Assembly: GCF_006345805.1 (NCBI RefSeq) | Contig: NC_043003.1 | Span: forward strand, 115,878,001 to 115,942,000 | From: Octopus sinensis | Taxonomy: Eukaryota | Length of the DNA: 64,000 nt | Direction of reading: 5' to 3' | Part shown: positions 1 to 60,552 of the stretch, one piece after another | Numbering within the stretch: position 1 is the first letter of the stretch | Layout of the letters: each line of letters opens with the position of its first letter | Notes under the pieces: model-generated | Database searches by the model: none | Told to the model about the DNA's origin: nothing | The model's input: only the letters and a program-made list of their open reading frames with translations | Made by a program: the position numbers and the translations under genes

Positions 1-178
1 CACCAGCTGCTGAATATCTTCGTTTGCCATGTGATGTAGGAAGCTTGATATGGTTTTAGGTTCTGCATTAATGTAGCAGCCAACTTTAACACGTGTAAGG
101 TAAGTTTTAGTGCTGTCGAATGATATTTCACAAATTGTTTTTGATTTAGACTATATACACGACATAGTAGTAGTAGTA

Positions 179-246
<68 letters not shown>

Positions 247-247
<1 letters not shown>

Positions 248-355
248 CATGTGCCTAGTGTACCCCTGTCAGACGGGTAGTCATGATGGGTATACTGGGC
301 TTCGTATATTTTACCCCAGTGTCACTTTGATGGCATGCACTGCTCTCTCTCACTC
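247..355 (+). mobile_element. 5'-truncated copy of a non-coding (TAA)n-flanked element
   Basis: Matches the last ~110 nt of 18801-19355 (ending CTCTCACTC); (AAT)n on both sides. Confidence 0.7.
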
Positions 356-408
<53 letters not shown>

Positions 409-570
409 GGGTTTCAATGCCACAAGGACAGCAATTTGGGAGGAAGAGATAAGTCGATTATGTCGGTCCCCGTGCGAAAGTGGTACTTAATTAATAGACC
501 ACGAAAGAATGAAAGACAGAGTTAACATCGGTTGAATTTGAACTCAGAACGGAGCGATGAGAGAAATACC
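409..570 (-). mobile_element. Older SINE A-related copy (alternative 3' tail ending GAAACC then (ATT)n)
   Basis: Diverged match to the family A body (gaatttgaactcagaac, ggtactta, aagtcgatta) with a different tail. Confidence 0.6.
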
Positions 571-803
571 TATTTCTTTACTACCCACAAGGGGCTAAAC
601 ACAGAGAGGACAAACAAGGACAGACAAACGGATTAAGTCGATTACATCAACCCCAGTGCGTAACTGGTACTTAATTTGTCGATCCCGAAAGGATGAAAGG
701 CAAAGTCGACCTCGGCGGAATTTGAACTCAGAACGTGGCGGCAGACGAAATACCGCAAAGCATTTCGCCCGGCGTGCTAACGACTCTGCCAGCTCGCCGC
801 CTT
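571..803 (-). mobile_element. tRNA-derived SINE family A, full length
   Basis: Minus strand reads AAGGCGGCGAGCTGGCAGA (A-box-like), then GAGTTCAAATTCC (B-box), ending TAGTAAAGAAATA; many near-identical copies in the window. Confidence 0.85.
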
Positions 804-1238
804 CAATAATAACAGGATGAATGTTATCATGTAGTTGTTGTTTAAGTTAAAAGAGAGCTACGTTAAAATCCGTCTGCTCCATATATCCCATCCTTTTATA
901 TATTTCCAATTTAAATGTTTAAGGTTCTGATATACGCTTTGAGGTTACGTTGGATAGTATTTCCTGTAGATCGTGGGACCATGCCGAGATTTCCTAACTA
1001 GATCGTGTCACTATCAAATAGTGTTATTATTTCTGTTGTTGATATAGTGTACACATCAGCCATCAGAAGCCCTCCAGCCCAGATTATATTTATTGTAAGA
1101 CATATGCCATAATACTTGATCGATTTTTATTCACTATTCCTTTTTAAATGTTCCTTGTCTATTTGGTTTATCAAAAATATAATATAGAAACTATAATTCC
1201 CTTCAAAAGCCATTTAACTGTGCTTATGTATGACATAG

Positions 1239-1485
1239 TGAAGGCGCGTGGCTTAGTGCTTAGGGTGTCAGCATCATGATCGTAAGATTGTGGTTTCGAT
1301 TCCTGGGACGGGGCGACGCGTTGTGTTCTTGAGCAAAACACTTTATTTCACGTTGCTACAGTCCACTCAGCTAGCAAAAATGAGTAACGCTGAGATTTAC
1401 TGGCGTCCCGTCCAGCGGGGGAACACATACGCCATTGAAACCGGAAAACCGGGCCCATGAGTCTAGCTAGGCTTTAAAAGGGCGC
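1239..1485 (+). mobile_element. tRNA-derived SINE, body C + tail 1
   Basis: GGCTTAGTG...TTCGATTCC head; body TTGAGCAAAACACTTTATTTCACGTTGC; tail TGGCGTCCCGTCCAG...GAAACCGG. Confidence 0.7.
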
Positions 1486-2002
1486 AAAGAGATGTATGAC
1501 GTAATGTCTGGACAGTTCAGTTTAATCTTATATATTAAGTTATTTCCAACATTGATTTTTGTGTATCATTATTTACCTGCCTTCCCTAAGATGTTCTTAA
1601 CTGTTCAATGTTTCGGTTCTTTGTTGTATTGTATAACTTTTATTTACACTTACAAACTCGTCTGTCTTAGTCTCTTCGGTATCCTTGATATCATTCTGAT
1701 ACTTATATCTTTCTACACAGAAACACATTGCAGCCTTATAAGATACGACATGGCGACAACACACATGGAAAGTCGTTAGGTAGTTTTTGTTGTTATCGTT
1801 GATGTTTAGCCCCCTTCATAACAGAATGAAATTATGGCAACAGTCATCTTCCATTATATTTTCGGAATATAATTTACATCATATATTGTATTTTTAATTG
1901 ATGCTTTTTTTTAAACGATTTTATTTGATGTCGGTTAAATGTGGCTGCTATTTCAAATAGACGGAGGGTCATGTAGGAGATATATAATTTTTTGTTGTGT
2001 GT

Positions 2003-2299
2003 TCCTTCTCGAGCCATGCCTGGCTTATAAGGGCCAGTTTCCTGGTTTCTTGGCGTATAGTTTCCCCACCTGGACGGGACGCCGGTCCGTCGCAGGTGAG
2101 CTGCAAGATGCAGAAGGAAAGAGTGAGAGAAAGTTGTGGCGAAAGAGTCAGCAGAAGTTCGCCATGACCTTCTGCCGGAGCCGCGTGGAGATTAGGTGTT
2201 TTCGCTCATAAACACACAGATCGCCTGGTCTGAGATTCTAAACCACGATTTCTCGACCGCGAGTCCGCTACTCTAACCACTAGGCCATGTACCTCCACA
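2003..2299 (-). mobile_element. tRNA-derived SINE, body D + tail 1
   Basis: Minus strand TGTGGAGGTACATGGCCTAGTGGTTAG head; near-copy at 2867-3150. Confidence 0.75.
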
Positions 2300-2866
2300 G
2301 ATATATGATTGTTTAGTGTAGAGTAGTATTTCCTTATGTTTGTATGGAAACTCTAATTATCTTGTAATGTAATATGTATCCTCCTTAGACCAATGATATA
2401 TGGACATCGACATTCATCGTACAAGCTTGATTTTTTCACAAATACCTAGTTATTGGAACTTCCAGAATTAGCAACAAAATCAAGTACACATCACACTGTA
2501 TCGTTTTATAGAAAAGTAATAAATATTAACACAGTCTTTTATATGCATAAAAAAAGCTGAATGATTATGGGCCGAATGCTTTTCAATATAATCTGATCAA
2601 TCAGGAACTGACTGGGACAAAATCAGCCAGACATTCTATGTTTTCAACTCAATATATTATGACCACCATGCGATAGATAATCCGCTGGTCGGCTTAACCT
2701 ACTACAAATAGCAAGCAAATGTACCGCGCATTATGTATCGTAATATAGTATAAAAGAAAAAAAGATTAGCAGAGAAGCGAAAGCGTAGTTTATATTTGGG
2801 CTTATATTTCTCAGGTGGATAAGTAATTTTAGGGATGTTGATGGAATTTGTAGAGTGTTGAATATA

Positions 2867-3150
2867 ATGCCTGGCTTATAAGGGCCGGTTTCCCAGTTTC
2901 CTTGGCGTATAGGTTCCCCACCTGGACGGGACGCCGGTCCGTCGCTGGTGAGCTGCAAGGTGCAGGAGGAACGTGTGAGAGAAAGTTGTGGCGAAAGAGT
3001 CAGCAGAAGTTCGCCACTTCCTTCTGCCGGAACCGCGTGAAGCTTAGGTGTTTCGCTCATAAACACACACATCGCTCGGTCTGAGATTCGAACCCGTGAT
3101 CCCTCGACCGCGAGTCCACTGCTCTAACCACTAGGTCATGTGCCTCCACA
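2867..3150 (-). mobile_element. tRNA-derived SINE, body D + tail 1
   Basis: High similarity to 2003-2299; B-box GGTTCGAATCTC. Confidence 0.75.
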
Positions 3151-3760
3151 ACGTGAGCAGGATAGACCTACTAATCATTCACGCTAGATGGAAACACTCT
3201 AGATACGTTTCTATAATCCCAGGGTAAATAAAGGTGTCTTTGAAAAATACAATGGTTAGTCACCACTAACAATTAACTTTAAAAGCAATTTTGGTCAAGT
3301 TCTGCGTATAAATTACTAAGTAAACAACATGAAGAAGCTATAAGCTACCTATCACAATGCTGGTTGTCCAAATGAAAGTATCAGCGAAATATCCATCAAA
3401 ACCAGACGTTACAGTCCTAATATCTGAATAAGATGCATTGTAAAATGCAAGCAATATTTAAAAAAATATATTTCTATAACATATGTACCGGTTTGGATTA
3501 TCCCTAATATTGGATTATCCCTAATACTGTCTACCCATTCAGGGTTAGAGAAGATGAACGACAACATTAAATTGGTATACATTCGGAAAAAAGATGAAGG
3601 AAAATTATATATTTTAAGTAAACAAAGATTAGCCTACAAATGTTTTAAATACACATGAATCGGGTATTTGAAAGTGAAATAAAAATATTTTTTATATGAA
3701 ACTGCAAGGGTGGTGCTCTATTGTCGGTGGGATTGAGCGAAAAATGAGTCGAATTCCAAT

Positions 3761-3956
3761 CAAAGTAAAATATACGAACATTAAAACGTAAACATTGGAT
3801 AATGCAATCCTGGAATTATCACCTGAAAATTAACTGGTAAAATCAATGTTGGATAGGTTTAAATATATCTTTTTTCTGGCTGAGACAATTCTTAGGCTTA
3901 ACAAAAATTAACAAAATTTGACGAATTGAAAACATAATCTCTACAATCCTGCCCTA
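3761..3956 (+). repeat. ~195-bp direct repeat, copy 1 (copy 2 at 5545-5738)
   Basis: CAAAGTAAAATATACGAACATTAAAA...CTCTACAATCCT occurs twice with few differences. Confidence 0.9.
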
Positions 3957-4685
3957 CCTGTCAGAAAAAAAGCATCTCATTTGTCAATACATTGCGGTAT
4001 GAAATGGATAAGGTACTACAGGTAAGGTAAACTTGGATGATCGTAGCTGAATCAAATCGTTTGTATATGGGCCTCATCCATCATAACTATGGAATAAAAA
4101 GAAACAATAAAGAATTGTGTCATTGGTTACTGTAGCTCAGGATACGTTCTGTGTAAATAAAATACATGGTCGTCCCAATTATAAAAGTTTTGTTCTTAAA
4201 TTTGTTTTGAGATGATGGGGGTAAATCAAAATATCTACGAATCACCAAATGTAGTCATTGGTGTGTGATTTCTTACCATACAATGCAGTGTGCCTGGGGC
4301 ACTTATAACTGTAGGCCTTCAAAATTATAATTGACTTAATTTAGGGCAAACAGTGATGTGTTCCGTCACGATGGGATTAGGTTTCACGATCTAAAATTTC
4401 ATTTCGTTGACGTTTTAAATGTATTACTCTTTCTCTAAAACTCAAACACAATATTTCTTTTCGTAGATGCAATATTATGTTTTAATGAAGGACTCAACGT
4501 TTGATACGCGATTAGAAACTATTTCGATGACGTTGATAACAAAATGATAAAACTTACATATTTCTATATTAAGGCATATAACTTACTGAGCGTGGACATG
4601 TTTCGTCTTTATATAACAACTCCGTAATTTGTTGTTTATTATATTCTGTATGAAATCATTTGGTGATTCATTTTTTTACTTTCAG

Positions 4686-4743
4686 ATGTGTGAAACTGGA
4701 ATACCTCTGTTAATCAGCTTTGCGATGTTATCAGTTGTAGATG
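4686..4743 (+). CDS. Coding exon 1 (signal peptide, MCETGIPLLISFAMLSVVD-G) of a small secreted cysteine-rich protein gene
   Basis: Pyrimidine-rich acceptor (tttttttactttcag) directly before ATG at 4686; 58 nt open; hydrophobic core LLISFAMLSVV; donor G|GTATGT at 4744; ends in phase 1, matching the phase of exon 2. Confidence 0.85.
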
Positions 4744-5544
4744 GTATGTTTTAAAACACCTCATGCGAATTTACAATCCTCCGCTTCGTAAGGGGCTGGG
4801 CATTTATTTAAATGATATTATATCGAAGGATACGTAATACGTGATTTGAGAAGAATTTGATATCTTCTACTAGAAGATGTCTCACCGAATCTGGCTTTTT
4901 TTAACGTTATTTTTCTAATGTTGTTTATCGTTGGGCTTAAATCAGCATGTTTAAGCCATTAAAAAGACCCCATCAAACTTAAACTTTATACCGAAGCCTC
5001 ATATCACCCAGATACAACTGAACCGTTAATTTCCTGGCAGATATATTTTATTTCAATCATTTGGTTGTTTTTCCAAAGTTCAGTTCTGAATAAATGAATA
5101 TAATGGAAGCCATTCCTACCATGACCAGTACGTCTGTTTTCCCAATTCTCTGGTACAACATTATCTAACACCTCACTCATTAAATCGACGCAGTTTAATT
5201 AGAGTGAGATTTCGCTGTTATATCCAGGAGGTTGGGTGTTCACTTCGAGTCAGTTTCGTTGGATCTCTTCTCGGTTTTTGGGAAGTTCCGATATGTTCTG
5301 CTACAGGCAAATATTTGTTAAATAAAAACGTGCTTTTATATATCTTTAGAAAGTAGTATTTAGGCTCTAGAGCGCCATGTTGATCTGTCGCTTCAAATTG
5401 TGTGCGAGTGCGTTTGTGTGTATGCTGCGCGCGAGTGCGTAGGTGTGTGTAGTCTAAGAGCAGCTCCAGCAAAACTGATCTAAAGCGATTGACTTAGATA
5501 TTCATTGAACTAAACATTGTGGCTGCGTAAAAGAGGACCAAAGC

Positions 5545-5738
5545 CAAAGTAAAATATACGAACATTAAAAGGTAAACAGTGGATAATGCAATCCTGGAAT
5601 TATCACCTGAAAATTAACTATTAAAATCAATGTTGGATCAGTTTAAATATATCTTTTCTGGCTGAGATCATTCTTAGGCTTAACAAAAATTAACAAAATT
5701 TGACGAATTGAAAATAAAATCTCTACAATCCTACCCTA
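5545..5738 (+). repeat. ~195-bp direct repeat, copy 2
   Basis: See copy 1. Confidence 0.9.
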
Positions 5739-5940
5739 GAAGTGGTGATATATTCAGTGGGCTGTAGTGTATTGGAGGGCGTATATTGTTGCTCATATTT
5801 CTTTTATTCTTATATCGTTGCTGCTGCTGCGGCTACTGCTGCTGCTGCTGCAGTTGTTGTTGTTGTTGAGCAGACTGATAAAACAGAACGATCTTGATCT
5901 GCTGAAAACAACATAATTGTTGTTTCAGATTTCCCGATTC

Positions 5941-6246
5941 ACCCCGAAAGGATGAAAGGCAAAGCTGACCTCGGCGGAATTTGAACTCAGAACGTAGCGG
6001 CAGACGAAATACCTATTTCTTTACTACCCACAAGGGGCTAAACACAGAAATGACAAACAAGGACAGACAGACGGATTAAGTCGATTACATCCACCCCAGT
6101 GCATAACTGGTACTTAATTTATCGACCCCGAAAGGATGGAAAGACAAAGTCGACCTCGGCGGAATTTGAACTGAGAACGTAACGGCAGACGAAATACGGC
6201 TACGCATTTCGCTCAGCGTGCTAACGTTTCTGCCAGCTCGCCGCCT
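5941..6246 (-). mobile_element. SINE family A: full copy plus partial tandem unit
   Basis: Same AAAGAAATA|GGTATTTCGTCTG junction as in the other arrays, at ~6013. Confidence 0.8.
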
Positions 6247-6804
6247 ATTCACTCTGAATGACGTTGCAACATTCAGGATAAATATATTCTTTCTCCATTA
6301 CCCGAGAGATGCACATTAAGATTGTCACATACACTGATATGATTCCGATTCATTTGATCAAGCAACATCTTACGGGTAACAATTTGAACAACATTTACAC
6401 GCGAATAAAGGCGCTGCTTTTCACTGATGCTACGCTTCCGGTTAATAGATTTTAAACGTGCATATTTTAACAGGCTGCCAATAATCGTATGGGTTAAAGT
6501 GAAACAGCATGGTTAAATTGATGTAAGTGTTCAGAGATGGTCTGAACAAAAATGGGTGATATTATTTAAAGAACTAAATAATACGTATCTTTACTTTGAA
6601 CCTCTGCAGATTCCTGTTTGATTTAGTTATTTTGTAGCTCAAGTCCCTGCTTAATGCTGCAGATGTGGTACCTATAGCTTGCAGGATATGGCTGAACATG
6701 TGACACTTACACACATAATGTGTCCTACATACAATGTTTGCAGCCTGTGAAAGGTCATTATCAATACAGAGCAACTCAGTGACGGAGTATACTACTTACA
6801 GTGA

Positions 6805-6887
6805 ATATATATATATATATATAAGTATGTATGAAATATATATATATATATATATAATATATATATATCATATATATATCATACATA

Positions 6888-6922
<35 letters not shown>

Positions 6923-6939
6923 TATATATATCATACATA

Positions 6940-6980
<41 letters not shown>

Positions 6981-7241
6981 TATATATATATATATCATAT
7001 ATATATATCATACATACTTATATATATATATATATATCATATATGTATATATATCATACATACTTATACATATATATATATATATCATACATACTTATAT
7101 ATATATACATACATACATACATATATACATATATATACATATACATACATATACATAGATATACATATATATATATACACATATATACATACATATACAT
7201 ATATATATATTTATATATATATATATTTGTATGTATATAAT

Positions 7242-7284
<43 letters not shown>
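6805..7284. repeat. Compound (TA)n microsatellite with recurring TCATACATACTTA spacer
   Basis: Seen directly. Confidence 0.9.
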
Positions 7285-7286
<2 letters not shown>

Positions 7287-7407
7287 ATGTCGTAGGTTTT
7301 ATGAATATCTTAAAGGTGCCGACGTATAAAAAGATCTTCTCAGGATAAATTTTCTGGCGAAAAATTTAAGCAATGCTTACTCATGTTTTCTTTCTCATTT
7401 CAAATAG

Positions 7408-7560
7408 GAAACCCTGCAGGAATCAATTGTACTGGCTGTCATTATAAAGGCGAATGTATCTGCGATGCAATGAAATGGCCTGTTGCAGAAAATGGATTAT
7501 GTCTGGTTAAGATGTGTTACCACGAATATAACCGCTGGCATATGAATTTCGTTGTTTTCG
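7408..7560 (+). CDS. Coding exon 2 of the secreted Cys-rich protein (NPAGINCTGCHYKGECICDAMKWPVAENGLCLVKMCYHEYNRWHMNFVVF)
   Basis: Acceptor ttttctttctcatttcaaatag|, donor TTCG|GTAAGA; 153 nt, symmetric phase 1-1, no stop, 6 Cys; lies within ORF-track entry 7383..7577. Confidence 0.9.
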
Positions 7561-7743
7561 GTAAGAGAATATATTGAAAATATACACTTGTGTATTGATT
7601 AAATCCTGAACTAAAACATTTGCGTGGACTGTAGAAGACAAAACGGCATTCACATTTGGAAGGCACAACGAAACGGCCGACATACAAACTTCAAACTACA
7701 ACCATATTTGGTTACCATGACGTCGTAACGTCGCAGAAATTCG

Positions 7744-8490
7744 TATTAGGTTGTTTCACATGAAATGTCACATTTTTAATTACTTGTTATTTCAGTCATT
7801 TAAAAACTGAATTATATATAGCTTACATTTAATTTTGACTCTTTTTCTTTCCCAACAATATTGGTATACAAAATTCGTACCCACAGACATTATGAAAGCG
7901 ATAACAATCAAACTATGTTGAGTGATTTTCTCGTATGTGTACAAACTATGTCACTCTGCTGCAGAAGCTCTACGGAACATCAAGCGGGCATTTGGTAATG
8001 GTTTTGTTGACACCAAAAGCTTTCTTTCAGGAGATGATAGCCTTGAAAATAAACCCAGGGGTAGGCATAATGGGTTAAATGCTTTAGTTGTCTGAAAACA
8101 AAGGTTCGGAAACCTTCCTCAGACTCCAAACATCTCGCACAACAATTTTTGGACACCTGTAAAGAAATGGAAAAGTCAAGAAAACAGATAAGATTGTTCC
8201 TCATCAACTGAACGAGATTAAAAAAACAGACGACTCGAAGTGGGCTTCTTATTGCTTTCTCGACATGAAAAAGATTATTTTTGCATCAAATCATGACTTG
8301 AGAAAACATCAGGACAACAGGAAAGTGATTAGATGCAGGAGAGTCACCTATACATTACCCAAACCTACCACTGCACCCTAAAAAGTTAGTGGTCGCTGAA
8401 TGGTGATCTGCAAAGGGAATTATTCATTATTTTTGCAACAAGGAAAAATGGGAAGAGCAACATACTATTGCCAGGAAATTGATGCTGTGA
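7744..8490 (+). mobile_element. Decayed mariner (Tc1/mariner) transposon, 5' half
   Basis: TA+TTAGGTTG terminus; broken translation with mariner motifs AAEALRNIKRAFG, SGDDSLE, IVPHQLNE, LHPKK and KGIIHY...YYCQEID; many stops and frameshifts. Confidence 0.85.
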
Positions 8491-9119
8491 TGGATGATAC
8501 TGGCCGCAGACCACCAAACATTTACCATGACCTTCTTTTGTTGCAACTTTGGCTTCGGGAACTGCCGTGGAGATTCGTCGGCGTCCAACCACTGAGCTGA
8601 GTGTCGCCGGTTGTCGTAAAGAGTCCACTTTTCATCGCAAGTTACAATCAGGTCGAGAAACGGGTCGTCCTTGTTGCATAAAAAAGGGAAGACGTCAATT
8701 CAAAACGGCGTTTTTTTTTTTGTGAGGGTTGTCGTTCAATTCGTGCGGCACCCATTTCTCAAGTATTTTTTTCCAATCTCTTTCAAGTGGCTGGCATTTT
8801 TCGTATACATTATGTCTAATTCAGAAGCAAGCTCACGAACAGCTGTGCGTGGATTGGCCTTGATTAAGGTCCTTAGTTGATCGTTGTCAACATCCGATGA
8901 CCGACCACTACACTTATGATCTTCAAGACTCTCGTCACCGCTACGAAATTTCTTGAAACACCATTGTGCTGTACGTTTATTAGTGGTTCCTGTAAAGCGA
9001 AAAAACGGGTTTTAAAATGATATATAAAATTCAAATTAATTTAACGAAAATTAATTCGAAAATATATAATTTAAAACCAAAATTAAAACTCCCGCAAGAA
9101 CTTTCTTGATAACCTAATA
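8491..9119 (-). mobile_element. Second decayed mariner transposon, 5' half, inverted relative to the first
   Basis: Minus-strand TA+TTAGGTTA terminus at 9119; translation includes QWCFKKFRSGDESLED, IVTCDEKWTLYDN and FPKPKLQQKKVMVNVWWSAASII. Confidence 0.9.
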
Positions 9120-9714
9120 TTTACTTTCTATTCTGTCCTTCAGACTTTGAAATAAGTTTGCCCTTTAGCTTTTTATCTGTTTCATGCGCTGGAGTGTGGC
9201 CATTTAGTGGCACCGCCTCAACAAGTTTAGTTGAACATATCGACCGCGTTACTCCCTTTTTTAGTCTACCACTTACGCCATCGGTCTCTTTCCCCACTGA
9301 GGAGAGTGAAATAAGCCAATGCTGGTTGTAAAGCTGTGGTGTAGAACAAACACATGTACAAACGCACACGTATATACAACTGGCTTCCGCACAGTTTCCG
9401 CTTGCCAAGTTCATTCACAAGGCATTGGTCGAGACGATAGAAGGATACGCGAAGCCAAAGTGCTGCGCAAGTTAGCAGATTGGAGTTTCTCTGGATAATG
9501 TTGAGGATGCTCATCTACCTAACAACAACAAGGGAACACTATTTGAATAATTAGGAAATTATTACAATAATGTTCGCGCTTGTAAAGTGTACAAAATCTG
9601 CAAGAATTAAAGTCTAATATTTTCTTTTAGCATTTTCCGTTTTTGTGACATCGTTAATGTCGCCTTACCTTAGATATGTCAACTTAGTTGATATTTGGTG
9701 TATTTTTATTTCAG

Positions 9715-9785
9715 ATTGTTCTAGACTTTGCATAATAAAAGAAAAATTTAAAGAATTTGCAGAGAAGAACCCAAAACTTTGCTGA
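9715..9785 (+). CDS. Terminal coding exon 3 of the secreted Cys-rich protein (D-CSRLCIIKEKFKEFAEKNPKLC*)
   Basis: Acceptor tatttttatttcag|; phase 1 continues exon 2 in frame; 3 Cys, the last being C-terminal; TGA at 9783-9785; AATAAA downstream. Confidence 0.85.
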
Positions 9786-9832
9786 CATTCAACTTTGCGG
9801 ACAAATACGAAAGTTGTATTATTGCTGAGAAA

Positions 9833-9874
9833 AATAAAATCAATCATGTTTGCATTGTATTATGATCCAATAAA
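9833..9874 (+). promoter_or_regulatory. Candidate polyadenylation signals of the Cys-rich gene (AATAAA at 9833-9838 and 9869-9874)
   Basis: Two canonical hexamers about 50 and 85 nt after the stop codon, just before the next SINE. Confidence 0.55.
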
Positions 9875-9963
9875 ATAATCAAGTCAAATCAATGTTAATT
9901 ATTTAATTTTGATGAGGATACTGATGAAGTAATGATTATGGACAAATAAACGAATATATTCCA

Positions 9964-10383
9964 GGGCTGTGTGGTAAGTAGATTGCTTACGAACCACATG
10001 GTTCCGGGTTCAGTCCCACTGCGTGGCACCTTGGGCAAGTGTCTTCCACTATAGCCTCAGCCCGATCAAAGCCTTGTGAGTGGATTTGGTAGACGGAAAC
10101 TGAAAGAAGCCCGTCGTATATATCTATATGTATATATATATATATATGTATGTGTGTGTTTGTGTGTCTCTGTTTGCCCCCTCCCAAACATCACTTGACA
10201 ACCGAGGATGGTGAGTTTGCGTCCCCGTAACTTAGCGGTTGGGCAAAAGAGACCGATAGAATAAGTACTAGGCTTATAAAGAATAAATCCTGGGGTCAAT
10301 TTGCTCGACAAAAGGCGGTGCTCCAGCATGACCACACTCAAATGACTGAAACAAGTTTATGAGTAAAAGAGTGAAAAGAGAGA
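9964..10383 (+). mobile_element. tRNA-derived SINE family B (CORE-SINE-like, internal TA/TG microsatellite, (GTAAAAGA)n tail)
   Basis: GGCTGTGTGGTAAG...GGTTCAGTCCC head; CACCTTGGGCAAGT resembles the CORE domain; multiple copies in the window. Confidence 0.8.
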
Positions 10384-10708
10384 GTTCTCGTTTGGATGAA
10401 TTTGTTATTCGAGTTACAATGAATTCTACGACAGAGGAACTTTTAATTGGCGAGCATCTTACCAGACGTAACCACAGCATCATCCCAAACGTAAAGTTTC
10501 TGATTATATAAAGAAAACATCATAGAGCAAATAATGGGGCGGATATGGTGTCGTAATATTAGGTGAATTCATATTTTCTCTACTAACACCCCCCACACGC
10601 ACACACACATACACATACACGCACACATACACACGCATACACACACACACGCATGCACACCCAATGCTACGACACTACAAGGGTTTCCTTGGCGGTAAGA
10701 AGATATGG

Positions 10709-11109
10709 CAGAACCGCTAGCACGCCTGACGAAATGCTTAGCGGTATTTCGTCTGTCGTTACGTTCTGAGTTCAAATTCCGCCGAGGTCGACTTTGCCTT
10801 TCATCCTTTCTGGGTCGATAAATTAAGTACCAGTTACGCACTGGGGTCGATGTAATCGACTTAATACCTATGTCTGTCCTTGTTTGTCCCCTCTGTGTTT
10901 AGCCCCTTGTGGGTAATAAAGAAATAGGTATTTCGTCTGACGCTACGTTCTGAGTTCAAATTCCGCCGAGGTCGACTTTGCCTTTCATCCTTTCGGGGTC
11001 GATTAAATAAGTACCAGTTACGCACTGGGGTCGATATAATCGACTTAATCCCTTTGTCTGTCTTGTTTGTCCTCTCTGTGTTTAGCGCCTTGTGGGTAGT
11101 AAAGAAATA
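10709..11109 (+). mobile_element. SINE family A tandem dimer with 15-bp target-site duplication
   Basis: Units 10743-10926 and 10927-11109; GGTAAGAAGATATGG at 10694-10708 and 11110-11124. Confidence 0.9.
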
Positions 11110-11589
11110 GGTAAGAAGATATGGTCAGTTTCCTCCAGGCCTCTTAAGAAGGCATTTTAATATTTTAGAGTTCTTGGAACATTTTGTATCATTATTCCGT
11201 GTCACTGGGGTACGAAATTTGCTTAAAACTGTACTTCAGATTTGTTAATTACGAGTACCTGATTTTTAATTTTGGTGTTGCTAATAATGGTTGCGAAGGC
11301 AGAGACAATGTTTGGTGGTGGCAGTGAAGAATACCAAGGAGGATTTCCAATCTTCCGTCGTGTTGAATCGACAATTTTGCTTTCCAAACATTATTTTCTT
11401 GTTATCGTTTTTGTTGTTTCGGTCGCCAGTGATGGCGGCAGTGGTGCCACTCGTATTGTTTCTGGTTTATGTTTTCCTGTCGTTTTCCTATGGTCGTCCA
11501 GTAGCAGTGAAAAGCTGTTGAGTTGAGACAGGTAACTGTTCCCTGGATTTACGAAGCCATATTTATATATACATATGATATAACACCAG

Positions 11590-11801: not shown

Positions 11802-12421
11802 TACTAAATAAAATATATGCATACATGCACACATATATGTACGTACCGACACCTACATGTATATATACATGCATATATAAATATATATACGTGAGTACAG
11901 GACACCACAACTAGACGTATAACTCAACGAAAAACGAAAACGGACAAGCCATATATATAGTTAAAAACAACAGCTAATATCGATTCCTTATACTCAAACT
12001 AACCTTCAAGCTTTTTGCCGTGCTGTAGCGTGACCGCAGTGGAATGAGTAAAATGAGTAAAAGAGAAACGATATATCAAAACCCAAAGTAAACATAAAAT
12101 CAAGGAATAATATGCAACAAGAGGGAAACGCAAACTGCAGTGATAGGTATGGTACGCAGAAAACCCTGGATAGAAATGATAAGACAAGGTTAAATCGGAT
12201 GAGCACTTACAGATTACTGACGTTGAAACCCAGGACAGAATAACAATAAAATGAATGAATGTAAACAATGCAGAACGAAAATCGTAAAAATTGAAATTAG
12301 GAAAATGACTGACCTCAAAATTGAAATGTTTGAACAATTCCGGACTATGGCGATGAATTTGAGAGTAAAATGTAGACGTTAATGATGATATTGGATCCAG
12401 TTTTTGGCACAAGATCAACAG

Positions 12422-12587: not shown

Positions 12588-15500
12588 AGGCGGAAGACAA
12601 TGCGGAAAAGTTAAAACTGCACACGTCAGAGGGAAAGAAAACCATTATACGCATAAATATTATAAGGAAAACCTTATTGTGTTGTGCTATTGTATTTGAA
12701 AAAGAATATTGTTCAATAATTCAAATTTACTTGCGAAAAAATAAATCCCAAGCAATCAACATGAAAAACTTAGTTGAAGAAAGTGTTTCGTCAATTCAGA
12801 AACATTCACTTAAGGAATGAAATGAAAAGAAAACTTTTACATTTAGTTTTGCTCTCTACTGTATATCCAATCAAACTTGAATGGTTTCGATAGTCCTTCC
12901 GTTTTCGATACAAAATAGACCCTGAGAGGCTTTTGGACATATCTGCATTTCTGAAATAAAAAGGGATCTTCTGGGATGTCTTTTAGGAAATTCCGTGTCA
13001 CAACATGAGATCAAAGTTGGTGGTACGTGACTGTTATTTAATCTCTGTTTTGATAGTGAGGTATAGATTACTGGATAAATACTGTGAAGCAATATACCTG
13101 ACAGTCTGTCGACCACCTTACAAATTCGCTGCATTCTGAAAGGGGATGAGACAATAGGCCTTTTAATTTCAGATGTAAAATATTAATAAGTTTCCTTTCT
13201 ACAATTTAAGAGCCAGTCCGTATAGCGCAAGTTAATCGTTTGAATATAATTATAAAGGAATTATAATAAAATATTAAGGAGCTGGAACCTACAAATAAAA
13301 GGGTTGAGAAAAGGGCGCCAAAGTTTATTAGGTATTTTGTAAAAAGTTGAACCTCATTGCATAATCACTGAAATACGTATAATCACATACAAGTTTACTT
13401 ATAGGTTCGCATGCATTATTGTACATTAGAAATAGAGTCGTTATGATGTTGCGCACACTGAAATATTAAAGGTAACAGAGATGATATTTGGTGTTTTCTA
13501 AACAAATTGCAATTTATGAATATCTAACACATGACATTTCGTAGCAATAATGTTCATACTATAAATCATGGAAGGTTATTTAAAATATAATTTTCGCTCC
13601 AATAAATATAAATAAATGAACTCTTGTTTGTCACCATCTTAGTACTATCTCAACCACGACCACTAACGGAGCGACGGTGAAGAATTTATTTATTTAATTT
13701 ACACTGTTTAATTTCTATTATGTATATTAGACTTCTACTACCTTTGTGTGTAAGGCTATAACTATGGAACAAAATCGAAGGCATAATCGATTTATGAGAC
13801 AACAATAATACCATTCGGAATACAATCGACTGAAAATCAATTAAATTGTATCGAAGAAATAATCTAATTATCGATAATAATTTAAAATATAGAAACAAAT
13901 GTTATGTTATCTGAAATACAATTTCAAAAGAACTTGTATATTTCATGGCTCTCTATAAACTATTGCGAAGTCATAGTTTAAAATAACATTGGAAAATCAA
14001 CCGATACAGTTAGTATTTATAGTAAACGGCGTGTGTGACAACAAAAATCTAATAATTTAAATCAAGGTAATTTTACTATTTGGCACACAAAGCAGATACA
14101 AATAAATAGAAAACTGTCCAAGCTGTCCACATAAAGGTGAAATGTCATTATTAATTATAATCGAGTTTTGTTCCATTATTAATCTTTGTTTCTTGGATGC
14201 AAACACACCCACCACCTCTTGGCAGTTTTGCTGTAGTTTTCTACATTTATTTTGTTCTGATTTTCACTAATATTCTCAGTTCTGATTTCTAGATTTCATC
14301 CAGAGTTTCAAGTCTAATTAATATATCAATTACTTGTGAAATTTTGGGGATAGAGTTGCGAAGAAGTTATTTCGTTAGGAAAGCGTCTCAATTTAAAAAA
14401 AAAGCTGAAAATCCGGTTACGTTTTGAAAATTATGCTGCAACAATTCTGTCGCCTCAAGACTCTCTGAATTTTTTTTTCAGCCACGGTAACTGAGCTGTC
14501 ATCCACAATATCACGATAACTTTCTAGAGTGTTTTTGGTAACAGATTACCCACGATATATGTGAATCATGTCCCAACATTAAGTAGCAAAAGAATATGGA
14601 TTCCACCCAAGAGAGGCGGGCCCTGTGATACCATGTGATGTGATACTGTTCCTCCAATCTATGTAGGAATTAGACATTTCTTGGTAATATTTGATGGAGA
14701 AGCGCTTATCGGTCCGTTTGTCAGTTTGGCTGACTTGCGCACGAGCTCTTCTGAGGTTTTTCCACCTGGAACACTATTACTGAATTTAATACTCGGTTTA
14801 GTCACTCAAACCAATAAATTATGCTCAGAAACTTCTTTTAACTACTAAATTGCAAACCCAATGGTGAACCCGTCTTTCAGTATTCCCTTAATATTCCACT
14901 ACCGAACAAAGACCATAGTGGTACTATGAAAATTACGAGGTGTCTACGATAGGAATGGGTATCAGAGGGTTATGCTCAATCCAGTCGAAAACATCAGAAT
15001 GTTTTAAATCATTAAACGCCTCTGTGATGTCATACTATTTCCTAGTAGATTCTATAAAGCAACCAATACTCGGGAATTTACTGGGATAATATTTTCCTAG
15101 GATTGAAGAAGACTCTGTGTCTTCGAAAACAAACAAAGACTACCAACTTCCTTTGCGATATCTTCTGCTTGCTCTATACGTAGAATATGTTTGGGACTAA
15201 ACTGTTCTTTTTAATAATACATTTTCTTCTCTTCTCGGTAGAATCACAGCTTTACATTAATTCAACTGCCGTTAGGAAATATCGTTGAAATATACACAAA
15301 TATCAGAAAGACCACGCGATCTCTAAAGCTTTGTATCGCTGAGACCCAAGAATATATGTCCTCTTATACTGCGTGTAGTCTAATTGTTACTTCAAGTGTT
15401 ACTTTCTCAGATGTTTCGCACTTAAGGCTGTTTCATAATAGTTGAGAGAAAGAGAGGTGATAAGTCCTGATCGAGGTCTAAAATGGTGTTCTCTAAATTG

Positions 15501-16532
15501 TCCTCAGTTGGAGAATCTCCACTGCAATGTTTGGAGTTTAGGAAGAACTTTGAAATATCCTGTGAAAAAGAAAAGTGGAAGAAGACACGAAATGGCGATA
15601 GAGTACCAAACAAAGACTGATGTTAATATCGGCAGAGAAAATAAGAGAGATAAGGAGGATAATTTTATCGTAATTGAGTATTGACGTGAGTAAAACAGGA
15701 AACTCTGCGGATAGAAATAAGAATGTACATATATGTGTGAGTCAACAGAAGTTTTAGTCATTCCAGTGTCAACAATGTTAGATTGCTACCCGTATTTGCG
15801 ATGATCAAAATATAGGTTAGCGCTGCATTGAAATGGCGTGTGACGGACCTAATTTCCAATGGACTGAACTATGGCAAATATACTATAAAAGCACGCCATA
15901 TTACACAATGCACTTGAAACTGAACGAAAGCCCATCACTAGAAGATCTCTTTTAGATTAAGTGGGCGTTAGGAGCAACGTGAGACCTCGATTTAAAATCC
16001 CAGCTGATCAAATTATACTCTGTATAGGAAATGTATAACTGCATCATCAATATCATCGTCATCATCTTCGTCATCATTATTGTCGTCGTCATCATCATCA
16101 TCATCATCAAAAGCATACATATATACGGTACATATAAATCAAATGAATAATTCAAAATATATATCTTACTCTAGACATGTTCCACCTGAATAGGACAAAG
16201 GAACGAGCAGAATTTGTGACAGTGTAGCAGAAGATTGCAATTATACGTACCAAAAGAAGAATATAAAATTATATGTTAGATGAATTTAAAATTTACAATA
16301 TTCTGCGCTTTAGAATACTAAGTACAGCCTGAAGCAATAATTATTATAAATAGTGTGCAACAGGTCTTATTAAGTATGTACTATAGACTTTCATTAGTAT
16401 GACTGCATTAGATGTGGCATGAGAGTAAATTGATCCTGGGTCCCTCTGCCTATGACTAAATGTATCTTAGTCCTTCTGTCCTCTAGGGACTTCCAGTTAT
16501 TGCATATCTTTGGCACAAAAATGAAAGAAGCC

Positions 16533-17300
16533 TATTTCTTTACTACCCGCAAGGGGCTAAACACAGAGAGGACAAACAAGGACGGACAAACGGATTAAGT
16601 CGATTACATCGACACAGTGCGTAACTGGTACTTAATTTATCGACCCCGAAAGCATGGAAAGGCAAAGTCGACCTCAGCGGAATTTGAACTCAGAACGTAA
16701 AGACAGACGAATTACCTATTTCTTTACTACCCACAAAGGGCTAAACACAGAGAGGACAAACAAGGACACACAAAGGGATTAAGTCGATTACATCGATCCA
16801 GTGCGTAACTGGTACTTAATTTATCGACCCAGAAAGGATGAAAAGGCAAAGTCTACCTCGGCGGAATTTGAACTCAGAACGTAAAGACAGACAAAATACC
16901 TATTTCTTTACTACCCACAAGGGGCTAAACACAGACAGGACAAATAAGGACAGACAAACGGATTAAGTCGATTACATCGACCCCAGTGCGGAACTGGTAC
17001 TCAATTTATCGACCCCGAAAGGATGAAAGGCAAAATCGACCTCGGCGGAATTTGAACACAGAACGTAACGGCAGACGAAATACCTATTTCTTTACTACCC
17101 ACAAGGGGCTAAACACAGAGAGAACAAACAAGGACAGACAAAGGGATTAAGTCGATTACATCGACCCAGAGCGTAACTGGTACTTAATTTATCGACCCCG
17201 AAAGGATGAAAAGGCAAAGTCGACCTCGGCGGAATTTGAACTCAGAACGTAACGGTAGACGATATATGGCTACGTATTTAGCTCGGCGTGCTAACGAATG
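16533..17300 (-). mobile_element. SINE family A tandem tetramer (184-bp units) with 11-bp TSD
   Basis: Units 16533-16716, 16717-16900, 16901-17084 and 17085-~17268 plus a truncated head; flanked by TGAAAGAAGCC (16522-16532) and TGAAAGAAACC (17301-17311). Confidence 0.9.
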
Positions 17301-24734: not shown

Positions 24735-25176
24735 GGTATCTTTTCGGTTTGAATGGCAGTTTTTAACATAATTTCTAGGTAACTAAAAAATTTTAAACTA
24801 CGTATAGTGGTAGAATGTATTTATAAAACATCCTTTTTCTCTAGGCTTTATTGAGAAAATTCTATAGTTTGTAAGATATTTGTTGTTTTCTTTCTTCAAT
24901 TTCTGCAATTTCAACCAATCAATAACCGTCTATTGAGGTAAAAACATTCTGTGCCGTATGAATATGTCCCTCGTTTAAGAAACAGATTGGGTTTATTTAC
25001 ATTTGTGAAGAAAAAAACGATACCCTTCCCCCACCCCTAACCCTAACTAACCCTAATTCTAACCCTAACCCTAAATTAGATTGAAATGCAAAAGATCGAT
25101 GCTAGGGTCATAAATATGGGTGACAATTTCATATGACACCGCTAGAAAAATCTGCCGTTCAAACCGAAAAGATCCC
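24735..25176. mobile_element. MITE, same family, with 6-bp TSD ACACTT and an internal (CCCTAA)n-like tract
   Basis: TIRs at both ends; ACACTT on both flanks; internal sequence is the reverse complement of 18059-18456. Confidence 0.85.
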
Positions 25177-29530: not shown

Positions 29531-30066
29531 TACATTTATATGTTTACCATTTATATTTTTAAATTCTTAAGTCCTTCAAGGCAAAATCATGACCCATTTG
29601 ATAATACTCATAATAATACCTCAGTTCTAGTTTCCTTTCCATTCTCCATGATCATCAATTTACACCATTTAAATAACCGCATCGTTATCAACTTTCCGCT
29701 GTGGAACAGTTTTAATCATCTTCCAGTAACCTTACTCACCTAAGACGCGTATCTTTGGTCACAATTTACGATCTTTCTTTTCTTTTCATTTAAAAAGGAA
29801 GCTGTGGCTGGAGAAGAAGTGTCTGTCGGAGTGTACGTTCCAAAATGATGGAAGCATGTTGCACAAGTGTTGGGCATGCAAGGAACCGTGTGAATAGACT
29901 GGTCAAAAGGAAAATATAAAATGGTACCAGCGGTAGATCGGGGCTTGTGGGGTCGGAGCGTGACCTGATCATCGCTTCATTTGTATTGCCTTTTGTATTG
30001 TTTATTTCTTTCAATTTTTATATATTGTATTAAATTTAAAAACCATATTATATGTTAACTTATACC

Positions 30067-30476
30067 TATTTCTTTATTATCCACCAGGGGCTAAACACAG
30101 AGGGGACAAATAAGGACAGACATAGGTATTAAGTCGATTACAGCGACCCCAGTGCGTAACTGGTACTTAATTTATCGGCTCCGATCGGATGAAAGGCAAA
30201 GTCGACCTCGGCGCAATTTGAACTCAGAACGTAAACACAGACGAAATACCTATTTCTTTACTACCCACAAGGGGCTAAACACAGAGGGGACAAACAAGGA
30301 CAGACATAGGTATTAAGTCGATTACATCGACCCCAGTGCGAAACTGGTACTTAATTTATCGACCCCGAAAGGATGAAACGCAACGTCGACCTCGGCGGAA
30401 TTTGAACTCACAACGTAACGGCAGACGAAATACCGCTAAGCATTTCGCCCGGAGTGCTATGCCAGCTCGCCGCCTT
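30067..30476 (-). mobile_element. SINE family A tandem dimer with ~14-15-bp TSD
   Basis: Units 30067-30250 and 30251-30434; flanks ATGTTAACTTATACC (30052-30066) and ATGTAAACTATACC (30477-30490). Confidence 0.9.
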
Positions 30477-47439: not shown

Positions 47440-48880
47440 ACGTTTTGTGGTATCATGGTCCATTCGAGTATGGAGTTCTTGTTAGTTGTATGCATATATA
47501 TGTGGATTGCCTTGTGTTTCTTGATGAAATTTGTCCAGATTCCGTTCAAAGATGATGGGATCCTTTTCCGCTTTAATCTGTTTCCAGATAATGTTAAATA
47601 GGATAGGGCCTGTTGAGGAAAAGAAATTGCCTTCCAGTGTATTTATGAGTTGTGATCATGAATTAGGTCCTAACCTTGGATAAATTTTGAAGCTAATGTT
47701 CAGTTCATTTGGGCAATACTGGTGGTATATTCTCGAAATCGTGCAAATGATGTATCGCTCGTGGCGGCGCTGAAGAGAGTAGAGTTTCAATGCTTTAATG
47801 TGGTTCCAGTAACGAAGTTCAGTCACGCATTTAATTCGTTTAGTGAATTTCCCCTGAGGTGATTCAATTTTCGTGATGTTTTGTTGCGTATGGGGAGACC
47901 ACAGGGAGAAACAGTATTCGAGGTGTGGCCCAACAAATGTGGAGAACAGTGGAATGATGACACCTTTTTCTCTGGACAGGAAGGTTCTTAAGATCCAGGA
48001 GCTCATTCTACGAGTTATATCGACCTTATTGTTGATGTGGGCACACCAAGTGAGATTGTTATCAACAATTACTCCTAGGTCTCTGATATTGCTAGATGCT
48101 GTGAGCGGTTCCCCTGAAGGAAGAGACTATGGCTGTTTTACTATAGTCTTTTTTCCAAACTGCCTCGGCTCAAATTTTTCCTCGTTGGAAAGGTAGTTTA
48201 TATGGATTATAAAGAGGAGCGGGCCCATGGCAGTCTTCTCAGGGACATCACTGGTGACTTTTGCTGGGCTTTAGTGGACTCCATCGACCACATGTTGTGT
48301 TCTGAAATACTCAATCCAGTATAGAAGTTTTCCCCGAATTCTACCATTTACCAGTTCTGTCAGTAAGATATTATGGTCAACTCCGTCGAACGCTTTGCTG
48401 AAGTCAAGATATACGTCATCAGATTTCGAATCTGCTCCCAAGTATATCCTCAATGTGGTGTGAAAGCTGTGTTAGACAGTCCTTGCCACAGTGAAACCAA
48501 GCTGATTTGTTTTAGCAGTTTGTGCATCTCCAGTAAGGTAGCTATCCTTGATCTTACCACTCTTACAAACACTTTAACGATTTGGGAGGTGAGTGAGATT
48601 GGGCGATTGTTGACTGCGTGGGATCTGTTTTCCTCTTTGAAAACCGGGATGACAGACTGGAATAGGAGCTGTTTCAGTATATAACCCGAGTCTAAAGAAT
48701 TTCTCCAGAGGTTGGTCAGAGGGGCTGCAAAGTGGTGTCTGCATTCCTTCAGCAGACTAGCGGTGAAACTATCAGGGCCTATAGCAGAATAGAATTTGAC
48801 CTCATTTATTGCTGCTATGATGTCTGAAGTAGTGAAGGTTATGACCGAAATTTTATGTTGGGGATCGACTTCGTTCACAT
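47440..48880 (-). mobile_element. Decayed CR1/L2-group LINE, RT and C-terminal region
   Basis: NRPISLTSQIVKVF, VYLDFSKAFDGVDHNILL, GPLLF, VGPHLEYCFSLWSPH, LKLYSLQRRHERY; frameshifted. Confidence 0.9.
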
Positions 48881-49157
48881 CGCATTGTTTTACATTATTT
48901 TATTCCCTCTCGAATGATAGCAATATTTGCTTTGAAACATATGTCGGATGTATAAAGACTTGAATAAAACCTGTGTTTAACTCCATTTCTTTATTCATCT
49001 CTTATACAAAAACGTTTCCATAAACACTGGCATTTCTACCTTTTAAGTAGGCTGTAACATCCTTGGTACATATGGGAATTCTTTTACTATCCTGGCCTGG
49101 TAACTATTTATATATATTTTCCGTGTTATTTGTACATATTGAAAAAAGTACACATAC

Positions 49158-59471: not shown

Positions 59472-60552
59472 TGTTTCTTTATTAGCCACACAGGGCTGCA
59501 CACAGATAGAACAAATTACAAGGTAGAGCTTTTCTTTTGAAGGTTTAAAAAAAAAAGGAAGGGGGAGTTTCGATCAAAAGGGATCGTAAAAGGAGAGAAA
59601 GAGGACAAAAAAAAAGGGGGGTTAAAAAAGGGGGGAGAGGAAAAAAAATGATCAATAGGGATCGTTATCACAGAAATGTCAATATGAAGTGTAAAGGGGA
59701 GGACAGGTGAGGTTTACCCGTGGAAAGAAAAGCCTACGGAAAAGACCACGGTAACCTCGCTCAATGGAGTCACATGTTATATTTCTTTTTTTTTTTTTTT
59801 TGCGAATAAGCAACTCTCTGTTTTCAATTTCTCGGTTCATAGGATCATGCTCAAGGTGGCTTCGTCATTCATACGTGCCATTCTTGCTACATTCACCAAT
59901 CTTTTTTTTAAAACATTCGCTAGACAAAACTTGCCTCTCTACTCTCACTTTCCTTTTCAAATGGTACTTGAAGAAGTTGATGAGAGATTGACCAGAGAGG
60001 AAAGTGTTTGTCTCCAATCCTTTCAGACGCGTCCACCAGATACATTCTTTCGCCATAGCCACAAGGATGATGAAAATAGCTCTTCCTTCCCGTTTGAAGG
60101 AAGGAGGCGTGACAATATTGACGATAGACTCAGCTGATAAACCGACTCGTCCCACACGTGACAGCAGTTGTTCGACATAAGCCCACAGGTCGGAAATTGT
60201 TGGACACTGCACGAGTGCGTGCAGAACGGTTTCGTCGCTCTGACCGCATCTCGGGCAGGTCGGCCCCGTGTTTCTCGAGCCGTGTCTGTAGAGCTTATCC
60301 CGAACGGCTAGCGCTTCTCGGTAGCACTGCCAGGCCAGGGATCTCTGGAAGTTGTCCATGGGCCCTGGCCCGAAAGTCGTCCTGAACAGGCGGTCAGGTA
60401 CTCCTCGTCGACGTCCAGGTTTGCCCCGAGCTCGTCGTCGTACCTCCCCTCCACTAAACCCCTATAGAATGCTTTGGTTGTGTTGAAGTCATTCAAGGTC
60501 GACCCAGGACGGCAGAGTTGCTTGAGAGCAACGCGACACTCGCGGTGCCATT
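59472..60552 (-). mobile_element. Tx1/L1-group LINE, 5'-truncated 3' fragment, between (GATA)n tracts
   Basis: ORF 59865..60359 contains the C-terminal Cys/His motif CPRCGQSDETVLHALVQC; 3' UTR ends AATAAAGAAACA; (TATC)n on both sides. Confidence 0.8.

Follow-up and report, generated by a model that had tools for sequence, protein, structure and literature searches.

A small three-exon gene of Octopus sinensis and the predicted secreted, cysteine-rich protein family to which it belongs

The question raised by this locus is whether three short open stretches of octopus DNA form a real gene and, if they do, what kind of protein it makes. The locus lies in a 64,000-nucleotide stretch of the Octopus sinensis genome (RefSeq assembly GCF_006345805.1, contig NC_043003.1, positions 115,878,001 to 115,942,000 of the forward strand), which is called the window here and whose own numbering is used for coordinates unless stated. 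The window is AT-rich (36% G+C) and rich in repeats. Positions 4686-9785 on the plus strand appear to hold an intact gene with three coding exons that encodes the 93-amino-acid precursor of a small, secreted, disulfide-rich protein, belonging to a family known in octopus. Judged from sequence, the probability of this reading is about 0.8. The gene is by its sequence a divergent paralogue of LOC128250447 of Octopus bimaculoides, in a family that has so far been seen in octopus only.

The three exons can be joined exactly as the initial annotation had proposed. Splicing 4686-4743, 7408-7560, and 9715-9785 by script gives 282 nt including the TGA stop and a 93-amino-acid product, and the GT-AG borders and phase-1 junctions are reproduced as well. 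All features of the gene are on the plus strand. Coding exon 1 (4686-4743, 58 nt) encodes M1-D19 and supplies the first base of the G20 codon, and its predicted signal peptide is MCETGIPLLISFAMLSVVD(G). It ends in phase 1 at the donor ATG/GTATGT (4744; a slash marks a junction here and below) and is followed by intron 1 (4744-7407, 2664 nt, phase 1), which carries an (AT)n microsatellite at 6805-7283 and repeats resembling short interspersed nuclear elements (SINEs). Coding exon 2 (7408-7560, 153 nt) encodes G20-F70, with the six-Cys core C-x2-C-x5-C-x-C-x12-C-x4-C, W43, and N61-R62-W63, and it too ends in phase 1, at the donor TCG/GTAAGA (7561). Intron 2 (7561-9714, 2154 nt, phase 1) cuts the G/AT codon of an Asp, the residue just before the seventh conserved Cys. 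Coding exon 3 (9715-9785, 68 nt plus TGA) encodes D71-C93, DCSRLCIIKEKFKEFAEKNPKLC, which contains the seventh conserved Cys and then a Lys/Glu-rich tail with two more Cys.

The splice sites are good ones for this DNA. The acceptors are TTTTTTTACTTTCAG ending at 4685, TTTCAAATAG ending at 7407, and TTTTTATTTCAG ending at 9714, and the five sites fall within the top 0.5-8% of all GT or AG sites in the window when scored with a generic metazoan splice matrix. The first acceptor (4671-4685) abuts the ATG and has a score of 5.5, placing it in the top 0.5% of the 3639 AG sites of the window. Past the stop there are two AATAAA hexamers (9833-9838 and 9869-9874, 48 and 84 nt downstream) that are candidate polyadenylation signals. 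The AATAAA after the stop had also been pointed out in the initial annotation and is indeed there, but it carries little weight, given a frequency of 1.2 such hexamers per kb across the AT-rich window. The accompanying claim that the gene could not be recovered from the list of open reading frames (ORFs) holds for the full protein, which needs splicing, but not for its parts, as each exon falls inside some ORF: exon 1 in a 41-amino-acid ORF starting with TTG, exon 2 in a 64-amino-acid ORF starting with ATG (7383-7577), and exon 3 in a 46-amino-acid ORF starting with GTG.

The spliced product has a homologue in another octopus. A HMMER (phmmer) scan of 1.84 billion cluster representatives gave one match (87 amino acids, E=2.8e-4, 36.9 bits), XP_052831433.1, 'uncharacterized protein LOC128250447 isoform X3' of O. 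bimaculoides; isoforms X2, X4, and X5 share its cluster. The records for this gene are XP_052831430-435 (isoforms X2-X5), and it is located on CM046621.1 at about 39.96 Mb. In BLASTP the window peptide and the paralogue align over 68 ungapped columns, from the signal peptide into exon 3, with a pairwise E of 1e-11 and about 29% identity. The window peptide and the LOC128250447 isoforms have exactly the same spacing, C-x2-C-x5-C-x-C-x12-C-x4-C-x15-C, and a G-L-C motif is common to both. The framework is already present in RefSeq in XP_052831433.1 and its isoforms, so the window gene is a new member and not a new family.

The two genes also share their architecture. The paralogue locus analyzed here is CM046621.1:39,951,686-39,974,262 (L001, with coordinates counted within it). 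LOC128250447 likewise has one exon each for the signal, the Cys-rich part, and the tail; its two introns are in phase 1, and its intron 2 interrupts the matching codon. Its exon 1 (L001 10001-10055) has 55 nt and its exon 2 (L001 11596-11742) has 147 nt, both ending in phase 1, compared to 58 and 153 nt in the window gene. Its exon 3 starts at L001 12109 with G/AT TGT (Asp-Cys), the same codon split as at 9715 in the window. The annotated coding sequence of LOC128250447 also begins at an ATG lying directly after a strong acceptor, TTCCATTGCAG/ATG, which is in the top 0.2% of AG sites, where the window acceptor is in the top 0.5%. The mature proteins are alike in size (7-8.5 kDa) and in having a near-neutral isoelectric point (pI).

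The two genes also differ in several respects. In the window gene, exon 2 has two additional residues at its N-terminus, and the distance from intron 1 to the first Cys differs by two codons, in an unconserved region. The introns of LOC128250447 are 1.5 and 0.37 kb long, compared to 2.7 and 2.2 kb in the window gene. The signal n-region is basic in LOC128250447 and acidic in the window copy. The tail of LOC128250447 is TNIIATLTEQT plus alternative ends, while that of the window protein is unrelated, a predicted Lys/Glu-rich helix with C-x16-C. LOC128250447 has four alternative tails, and none were found for the window copy. The LOC128250447 tails (L001 12109-12594) have four C-terminal ends that diverge only after ...TLTEQT; one arises by reading through the exon-3 donor (X2) and others by use of acceptors at 12354 (X3, SGAICWC) and 12571 (X4, RN). 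These tails contribute 0, 1, or 2 extra Cys.

A third member of the family is found close to LOC128250447. A tblastn search of L001 with the window peptide matched two copies, with E=1e-8 and 1e-5. The third family exon 2 is at L001 20404-20540 on the minus strand, has the peptide DCSGCPVFDQCICSKAAWFSKVFDTCIFKDCRWFNNRWSIVGTYI, and is flanked by a phase-1 acceptor and a phase-1 donor. This unannotated exon and LOC128250447 are about 8 kb apart and point in opposite directions. Its six exon-2 Cys are spaced identically, and a probable exon 3, DCAIIRASL, starts near L001 19312 and reads downwards. No convincing candidate for its exon 1 was found in L001, and this exon may fall past the end of the locus or in assembly gaps. 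The third copy was not among the searched proteins. Eleven residues are invariant in all three copies: C27, G29, C30, C36, C38, W43, C51, C56, N61, R62, and W63.

Two other small called genes overlap LOC128250447 on the same strand (L001 191-12594 and 4570-12473). Their products have 114 and 81 amino acids and no Pfam match. As with the signal exon, their first exons (MGAKGG... and MVKIFTKRCS...) have a phase-1 end. Neither product could be reconstructed by models of up to three exons or from the known exons.

No further copies were detected in the two loci. A hidden Markov model (HMM) was built from the three exon-2 peptides of the family, each of which matches it by construction, with 93-98 bits; the next best match in the window and L001 had 10.5 bits. 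Neither tblastn nor this model revealed a paralogue inside the window in a six-frame translation. A 10-residue look-alike, NCPSCPHKGE at 14112-14141, was read in all frames and judged to be due to chance.

Homology and the conserved gene structure, both read from sequence, are decisive for the reality of the gene, and statistics are not. The opposing explanation is that unrelated open stretches in AT-rich, repeat-rich DNA happen to be flanked by GT and AG and that there is no gene. Some features of the window would allow this: 58 of its 494 ORF segments of at least 51 amino acids hold a 51-residue stretch with at least six Cys (mostly in TG microsatellites), AATAAA, GT, and AG are abundant, many combinations were open to the initial annotation, and there is no paralogue within the window. 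However, a chance product would not be expected to align without gaps across all three exons to an annotated octopus protein, with seven Cys at identical spacing, and to share its intron phases and have intron 2 at the same place. Enumeration of models points the same way. All three-exon models were collected that had equal or better splice scores, a signal-like exon 1, 80-150 amino acids, and at least eight Cys. On the plus strand the sole exon 1-exon 2 pair that passed was the claimed one, and on the minus strand there was one microsatellite artefact. In Markov simulations (60 each at orders 1, 3, and 5), 0-3% of 64-kb strands yielded any model of equal quality; as the thresholds were fitted to the claim after the fact, this result is supportive only. 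Chance assembly is effectively refuted by these sequence comparisons, and we consider it extremely improbable.

The duplication appears to be old, and the window copy has kept its protein-coding features. At the DNA level, positions 1-10500 of the window share only dispersed repeats with L001, and the absence of similarity outside repeats indicates that the duplication happened long ago. The start, the stop, the splice sites, and all invariant residues are nevertheless intact, which suggests selection on the protein. Purifying selection is the best explanation for the state of the window gene, as far as sequence can tell.

A different explanation of the same locus is that it is a silent or decaying duplicate, structurally intact and untranscribed. 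This would explain why it is missing from protein collections: the exact protein, or any protein sharing its exon 2, is absent from 5.8e9 word-indexed clustered proteins. The acidic signal n-region, unlike that of the paralogue, and the fact that no promoter or first exon has been identified are also consistent with a silent copy. On the other hand, small multi-exon genes are often missed by annotation. The copies are old, as their identity of about 29% and the lack of DNA similarity show, but none of the 11 invariant residues has been lost, and the start, the stop, the acceptor before the ATG, and four splice sites are likewise preserved. Neutral decay over that time would break such features, and their intact state therefore counts against silence. 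On balance a silent copy is improbable, and an intact protein-coding gene is the preferred reading.

The precursor appears to begin with a signal peptide. The initial annotation had described an N-terminal signal-like exon, and this description is supported by the paralogue, which has a textbook signal peptide at the matching place. Exon 1 has a hydrophobic core of 13 residues (I6-V18), with a maximal 11-residue Kyte-Doolittle mean of 2.65, and its peptide aligns with the signal peptide of XP_052831433.1. The sequence V-D-G/N at the exon 1/2 junction agrees with the -3/-1 rule. The signal peptide of LOC128250447, at the homologous place, is MRAVLTIMFIFLVASTATA/Y, with M-R, a hydrophobic core, and A-T-A/Y. 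Thus the first 20 residues of the window protein are predicted to be a signal peptide that would be cleaved near V-D-G/N.

The mature protein is small and rich in Cys. It is about 8.5 kDa with a pI of 7.7-8.1, and its pattern is C-x2-C-x5-C-x1-C-x12-C-x4-C-x15-C-x3-C-x16-C, with nine Cys of which the last is the C-terminal residue. This pattern and the single N-C-T sequon are present as first described. The sequon is not conserved, and the paralogues carry N-G-C or no sequon. Only seven of the Cys are conserved; the totals are nine in the window protein, nine in isoform X3, eight in X2, and seven in X4 and X5. Judging by these sequences, an unpaired Cys is recurrent across the window protein and the isoforms of the paralogue. 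The initial annotation took the odd count as a sign of a disulfide-linked dimer, which would be one conceivable fate for such a residue.

A further explanation is that the coding sequence is incomplete or alternative. The 93-amino-acid form might be one of several forms or a minor one, with other first or last exons or a different start. Isoforms X2-X5 of LOC128250447 differ only after ...TLTEQT, and three other acceptors downstream of exon 2 in the window give open tails. The presumed intron also contains an in-frame ATG at 4650, 36 nt before the proposed start; starting there and skipping the 4685 acceptor would give a 105-amino-acid precursor with the N-terminal addition MKSFGDSFFYFQ. Against such variants, the chosen tail begins with the D-C of the family in the conserved G/AT TGT split, and the alternative tails lack it, while the annotated coding sequence of the paralogue starts at an ATG directly after an acceptor. 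An incomplete or alternative coding sequence is therefore unlikely, although less so than a silent gene, and the 93-amino-acid product is retained as the preferred form.

There are probably one or more spliced non-coding 5' exons upstream of the 4685 acceptor. An upstream non-coding exon is supported in principle because the arrangement of an acceptor followed directly by ATG is conserved in the window gene and its paralogue. The candidate donor for a first exon is CAG/GTAAGG at 4019-4027 on the plus strand (the G of GT is at 4022), which has a score of 8.26 and is the best upstream donor outside dispersed repeats. If this donor were used, the transcript would contain an upstream ATG (at about 4000) that is out of frame and 22 nt ahead of the junction. 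Two dispersed-repeat copies on the minus strand (1877-2191 and 2734-3123) share the ORF motif ...ETGPYKPG... and bear strong donor-like GGTGAGC sites on the plus strand (2096 and 2948), which could mislead a search for 5' exons.

The family does not match any described domain in the searches carried out. The Pfam search that had been proposed found no family for the window peptide and no clear match to a well-characterized one, only a chance match to Corona_NS3b (E=0.09). Among PDB sequences the best phmmer match had E=1.5, which is chance, and the family profile had no matches at E<=10. A profile made from the family alignment returned only the LOC128250447 cluster from a large protein database, and Pfam had nothing for any of the members. 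Nothing relevant was found in the literature on the accessions, the sequences, or Cys-rich secreted families of octopus. The suggestion that the framework may represent a lineage-specific secreted family thus stands with respect to lineage, with one relative in O. bimaculoides, but the framework is not unique to the window.

Two known families were considered and rejected. The initial annotation saw a loose resemblance to single-VWC modules, and this fails: four family sequences have no Pfam match to VWC (PF00093) at E<=10, and the window peptide has no adjacent Cys pair and no C-C-x2-C. VWC domains have 8-10 Cys with C-x2-C-x-C and C-C-x2-C motifs, neither of which is present here. The second candidate was beta-microseminoprotein/PSP94 (PF05825), the family of the squid contact pheromone. 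It also has no Pfam match at E<=10, and its framework differs; PSP94 has 10 Cys, unlike the window peptide.

The predicted fold has some likeness to fibronectin type I (FnI). AlphaFold was run twice, with the window peptide first and with the paralogue first, on a shared alignment of four rows, which come from only two distinct genes. In both predictions the elements are in the order beta-hairpin, three-stranded sheet, and C-terminal helix (mature residues 52-68 of the window protein). The FnI module is similarly a disulfide-held unit of about 45 residues, with a hairpin and a three-stranded antiparallel sheet. In Foldseek, the top PDB matches of the low-confidence paralogue model were the FnI pairs 9a3x_B, 3gxe_B, and 3ejh_A, with E values of 0.35-1.9, which are not significant; for 9a3x_B the TMq was 0.56 and the root-mean-square deviation was 2.1 A over 49 columns (E=0.35). 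The window model had no FnI match in Foldseek and nothing better than E=0.13; its matches to COMMD and AMPK fragments have no meaning. Pfam fn1 (PF00039) did not match the family sequences, and the number and order of Cys in FnI are unlike those of the window family. Fn1 has four Cys with a late C-x-C, and the same fold is found in the N-terminal subdomain of VWC. The likeness to FnI in these models is not significant and would be a lead, not membership.

Several points weigh against the reading of the locus as an intact gene for a secreted protein of an octopus family. The signal n-region, M-C-E-T-G, is atypical, with a net negative charge. The window protein is absent from the searched collections, and it may be merely unannotated, or silent. 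The restriction of the family to octopus was judged from protein databases, in which small genes are often missing. The confidence of the AlphaFold models is low with the thin alignment (pLDDT, the predicted local distance difference test, of 60.7 and 63.6; pTM, the predicted template modelling score, of 0.37 and 0.48).

The surroundings of the gene in the window consist of various repeats. A 184-bp SINE-like unit is found in tandem at 10743-11113 (two copies), 16531-17266 (four copies), and 30062-30434 (two copies), with 91-93% matches. Related dispersed repeats are also found in L001, and ARAGORN finds no tRNA in the SINE-like arrays. An interstitial telomere-like (CCCTAA)7 is at 25035-25074. 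Remnants of long interspersed nuclear elements (LINEs) or other retrotransposons are located on the minus strand at 59868-60461 and 47659-48899, the first of which has an ORF matching Pfam zf-RVT (E=8e-8); other retrotransposon remnant ORFs look like reverse transcriptase with no Pfam match. TG/CA and AT microsatellites are abundant, and Rfam and tRNA scans of the window gave no matches.

A simple scheme can be proposed for how the protein may work. For the window protein we infer secretion, a cleavage site, disulfide pairing, and a fold. The exon 1 signal peptide would route the precursor into the endoplasmic reticulum, with cleavage near the exon 1/2 junction (V-D-G/N). The exon 2 core would fold as a compact beta-rich module, with a hairpin and a three-stranded sheet, and three disulfides among the six invariant Cys would lock this core around the invariant Trp and N-R-W. 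Exon 3 would supply one more conserved Cys, the seventh, followed by a variable tail, which in this case may be an amphipathic helix of Lys and Glu that bears two further Cys. Outside the cell, the mature protein might then work as a binding module, either as a ligand or as a toxin-like or defence-like effector.

The function of the protein can only be guessed at in broad classes. A secreted effector of saliva, mucus, or defence is a plausible guess, though short of probable; a signalling or pheromone-type ligand is a possible one, with perhaps a third of the likelihood; and a structural or other role is unlikely. The small size, the near-neutral pI, the divergence around fixed Cys, the local duplication, and the tail swapping of the paralogue fit a fast-evolving extracellular binding protein, judging from sequence features, and they fit a cationic antimicrobial peptide less well. 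Most antimicrobial peptides are strongly cationic, unlike the window protein (pI 7.7-8.1). The family resembles the lineage-restricted secreted Cys-rich proteins of molluscs, such as venom or salivary proteins, defence proteins, and pheromones, in its signal exon, phase-1 Cys-rich exons, and small size. It also resembles them in its fast divergence with conserved Cys and in having been duplicated locally, with two copies in 10 kb of L001. However, it has no Pfam sequence or profile match to the venom, defence, and pheromone families of molluscs.

The window gene, LOC128250447, and the third copy may form an octopod-specific family whose Cys framework and fold are unrelated to described domains. 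In this proposal, to which we would give slightly less than even odds, the family evolved by local duplication and tail swapping, has a cephalopod-specific extracellular role (for example that of an effector in saliva or venom, or of a ligand in chemotactile sensing or pheromone signalling), and has had most of its members missed by annotation. As it stands, the family is an ordinary case of a lineage-restricted orphan.

The reading of raw sequence discussed here recovered a real, small multi-exon gene that is absent from the searched protein collections. The family had been known as one 'uncharacterized' RefSeq entry, and the window gene is its second full-length member, with the minus-strand copy in L001 as a third locus. 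Having multiple members exposes the conserved framework of seven Cys, the Trp, and N-R-W, and cephalopod genomes can now be searched with a profile. Venoms, defence, and chemical communication usually draw on small secreted Cys-rich proteins that evolve fast, and this family could be considered for such roles if it turns out to be tissue-specific in octopus.

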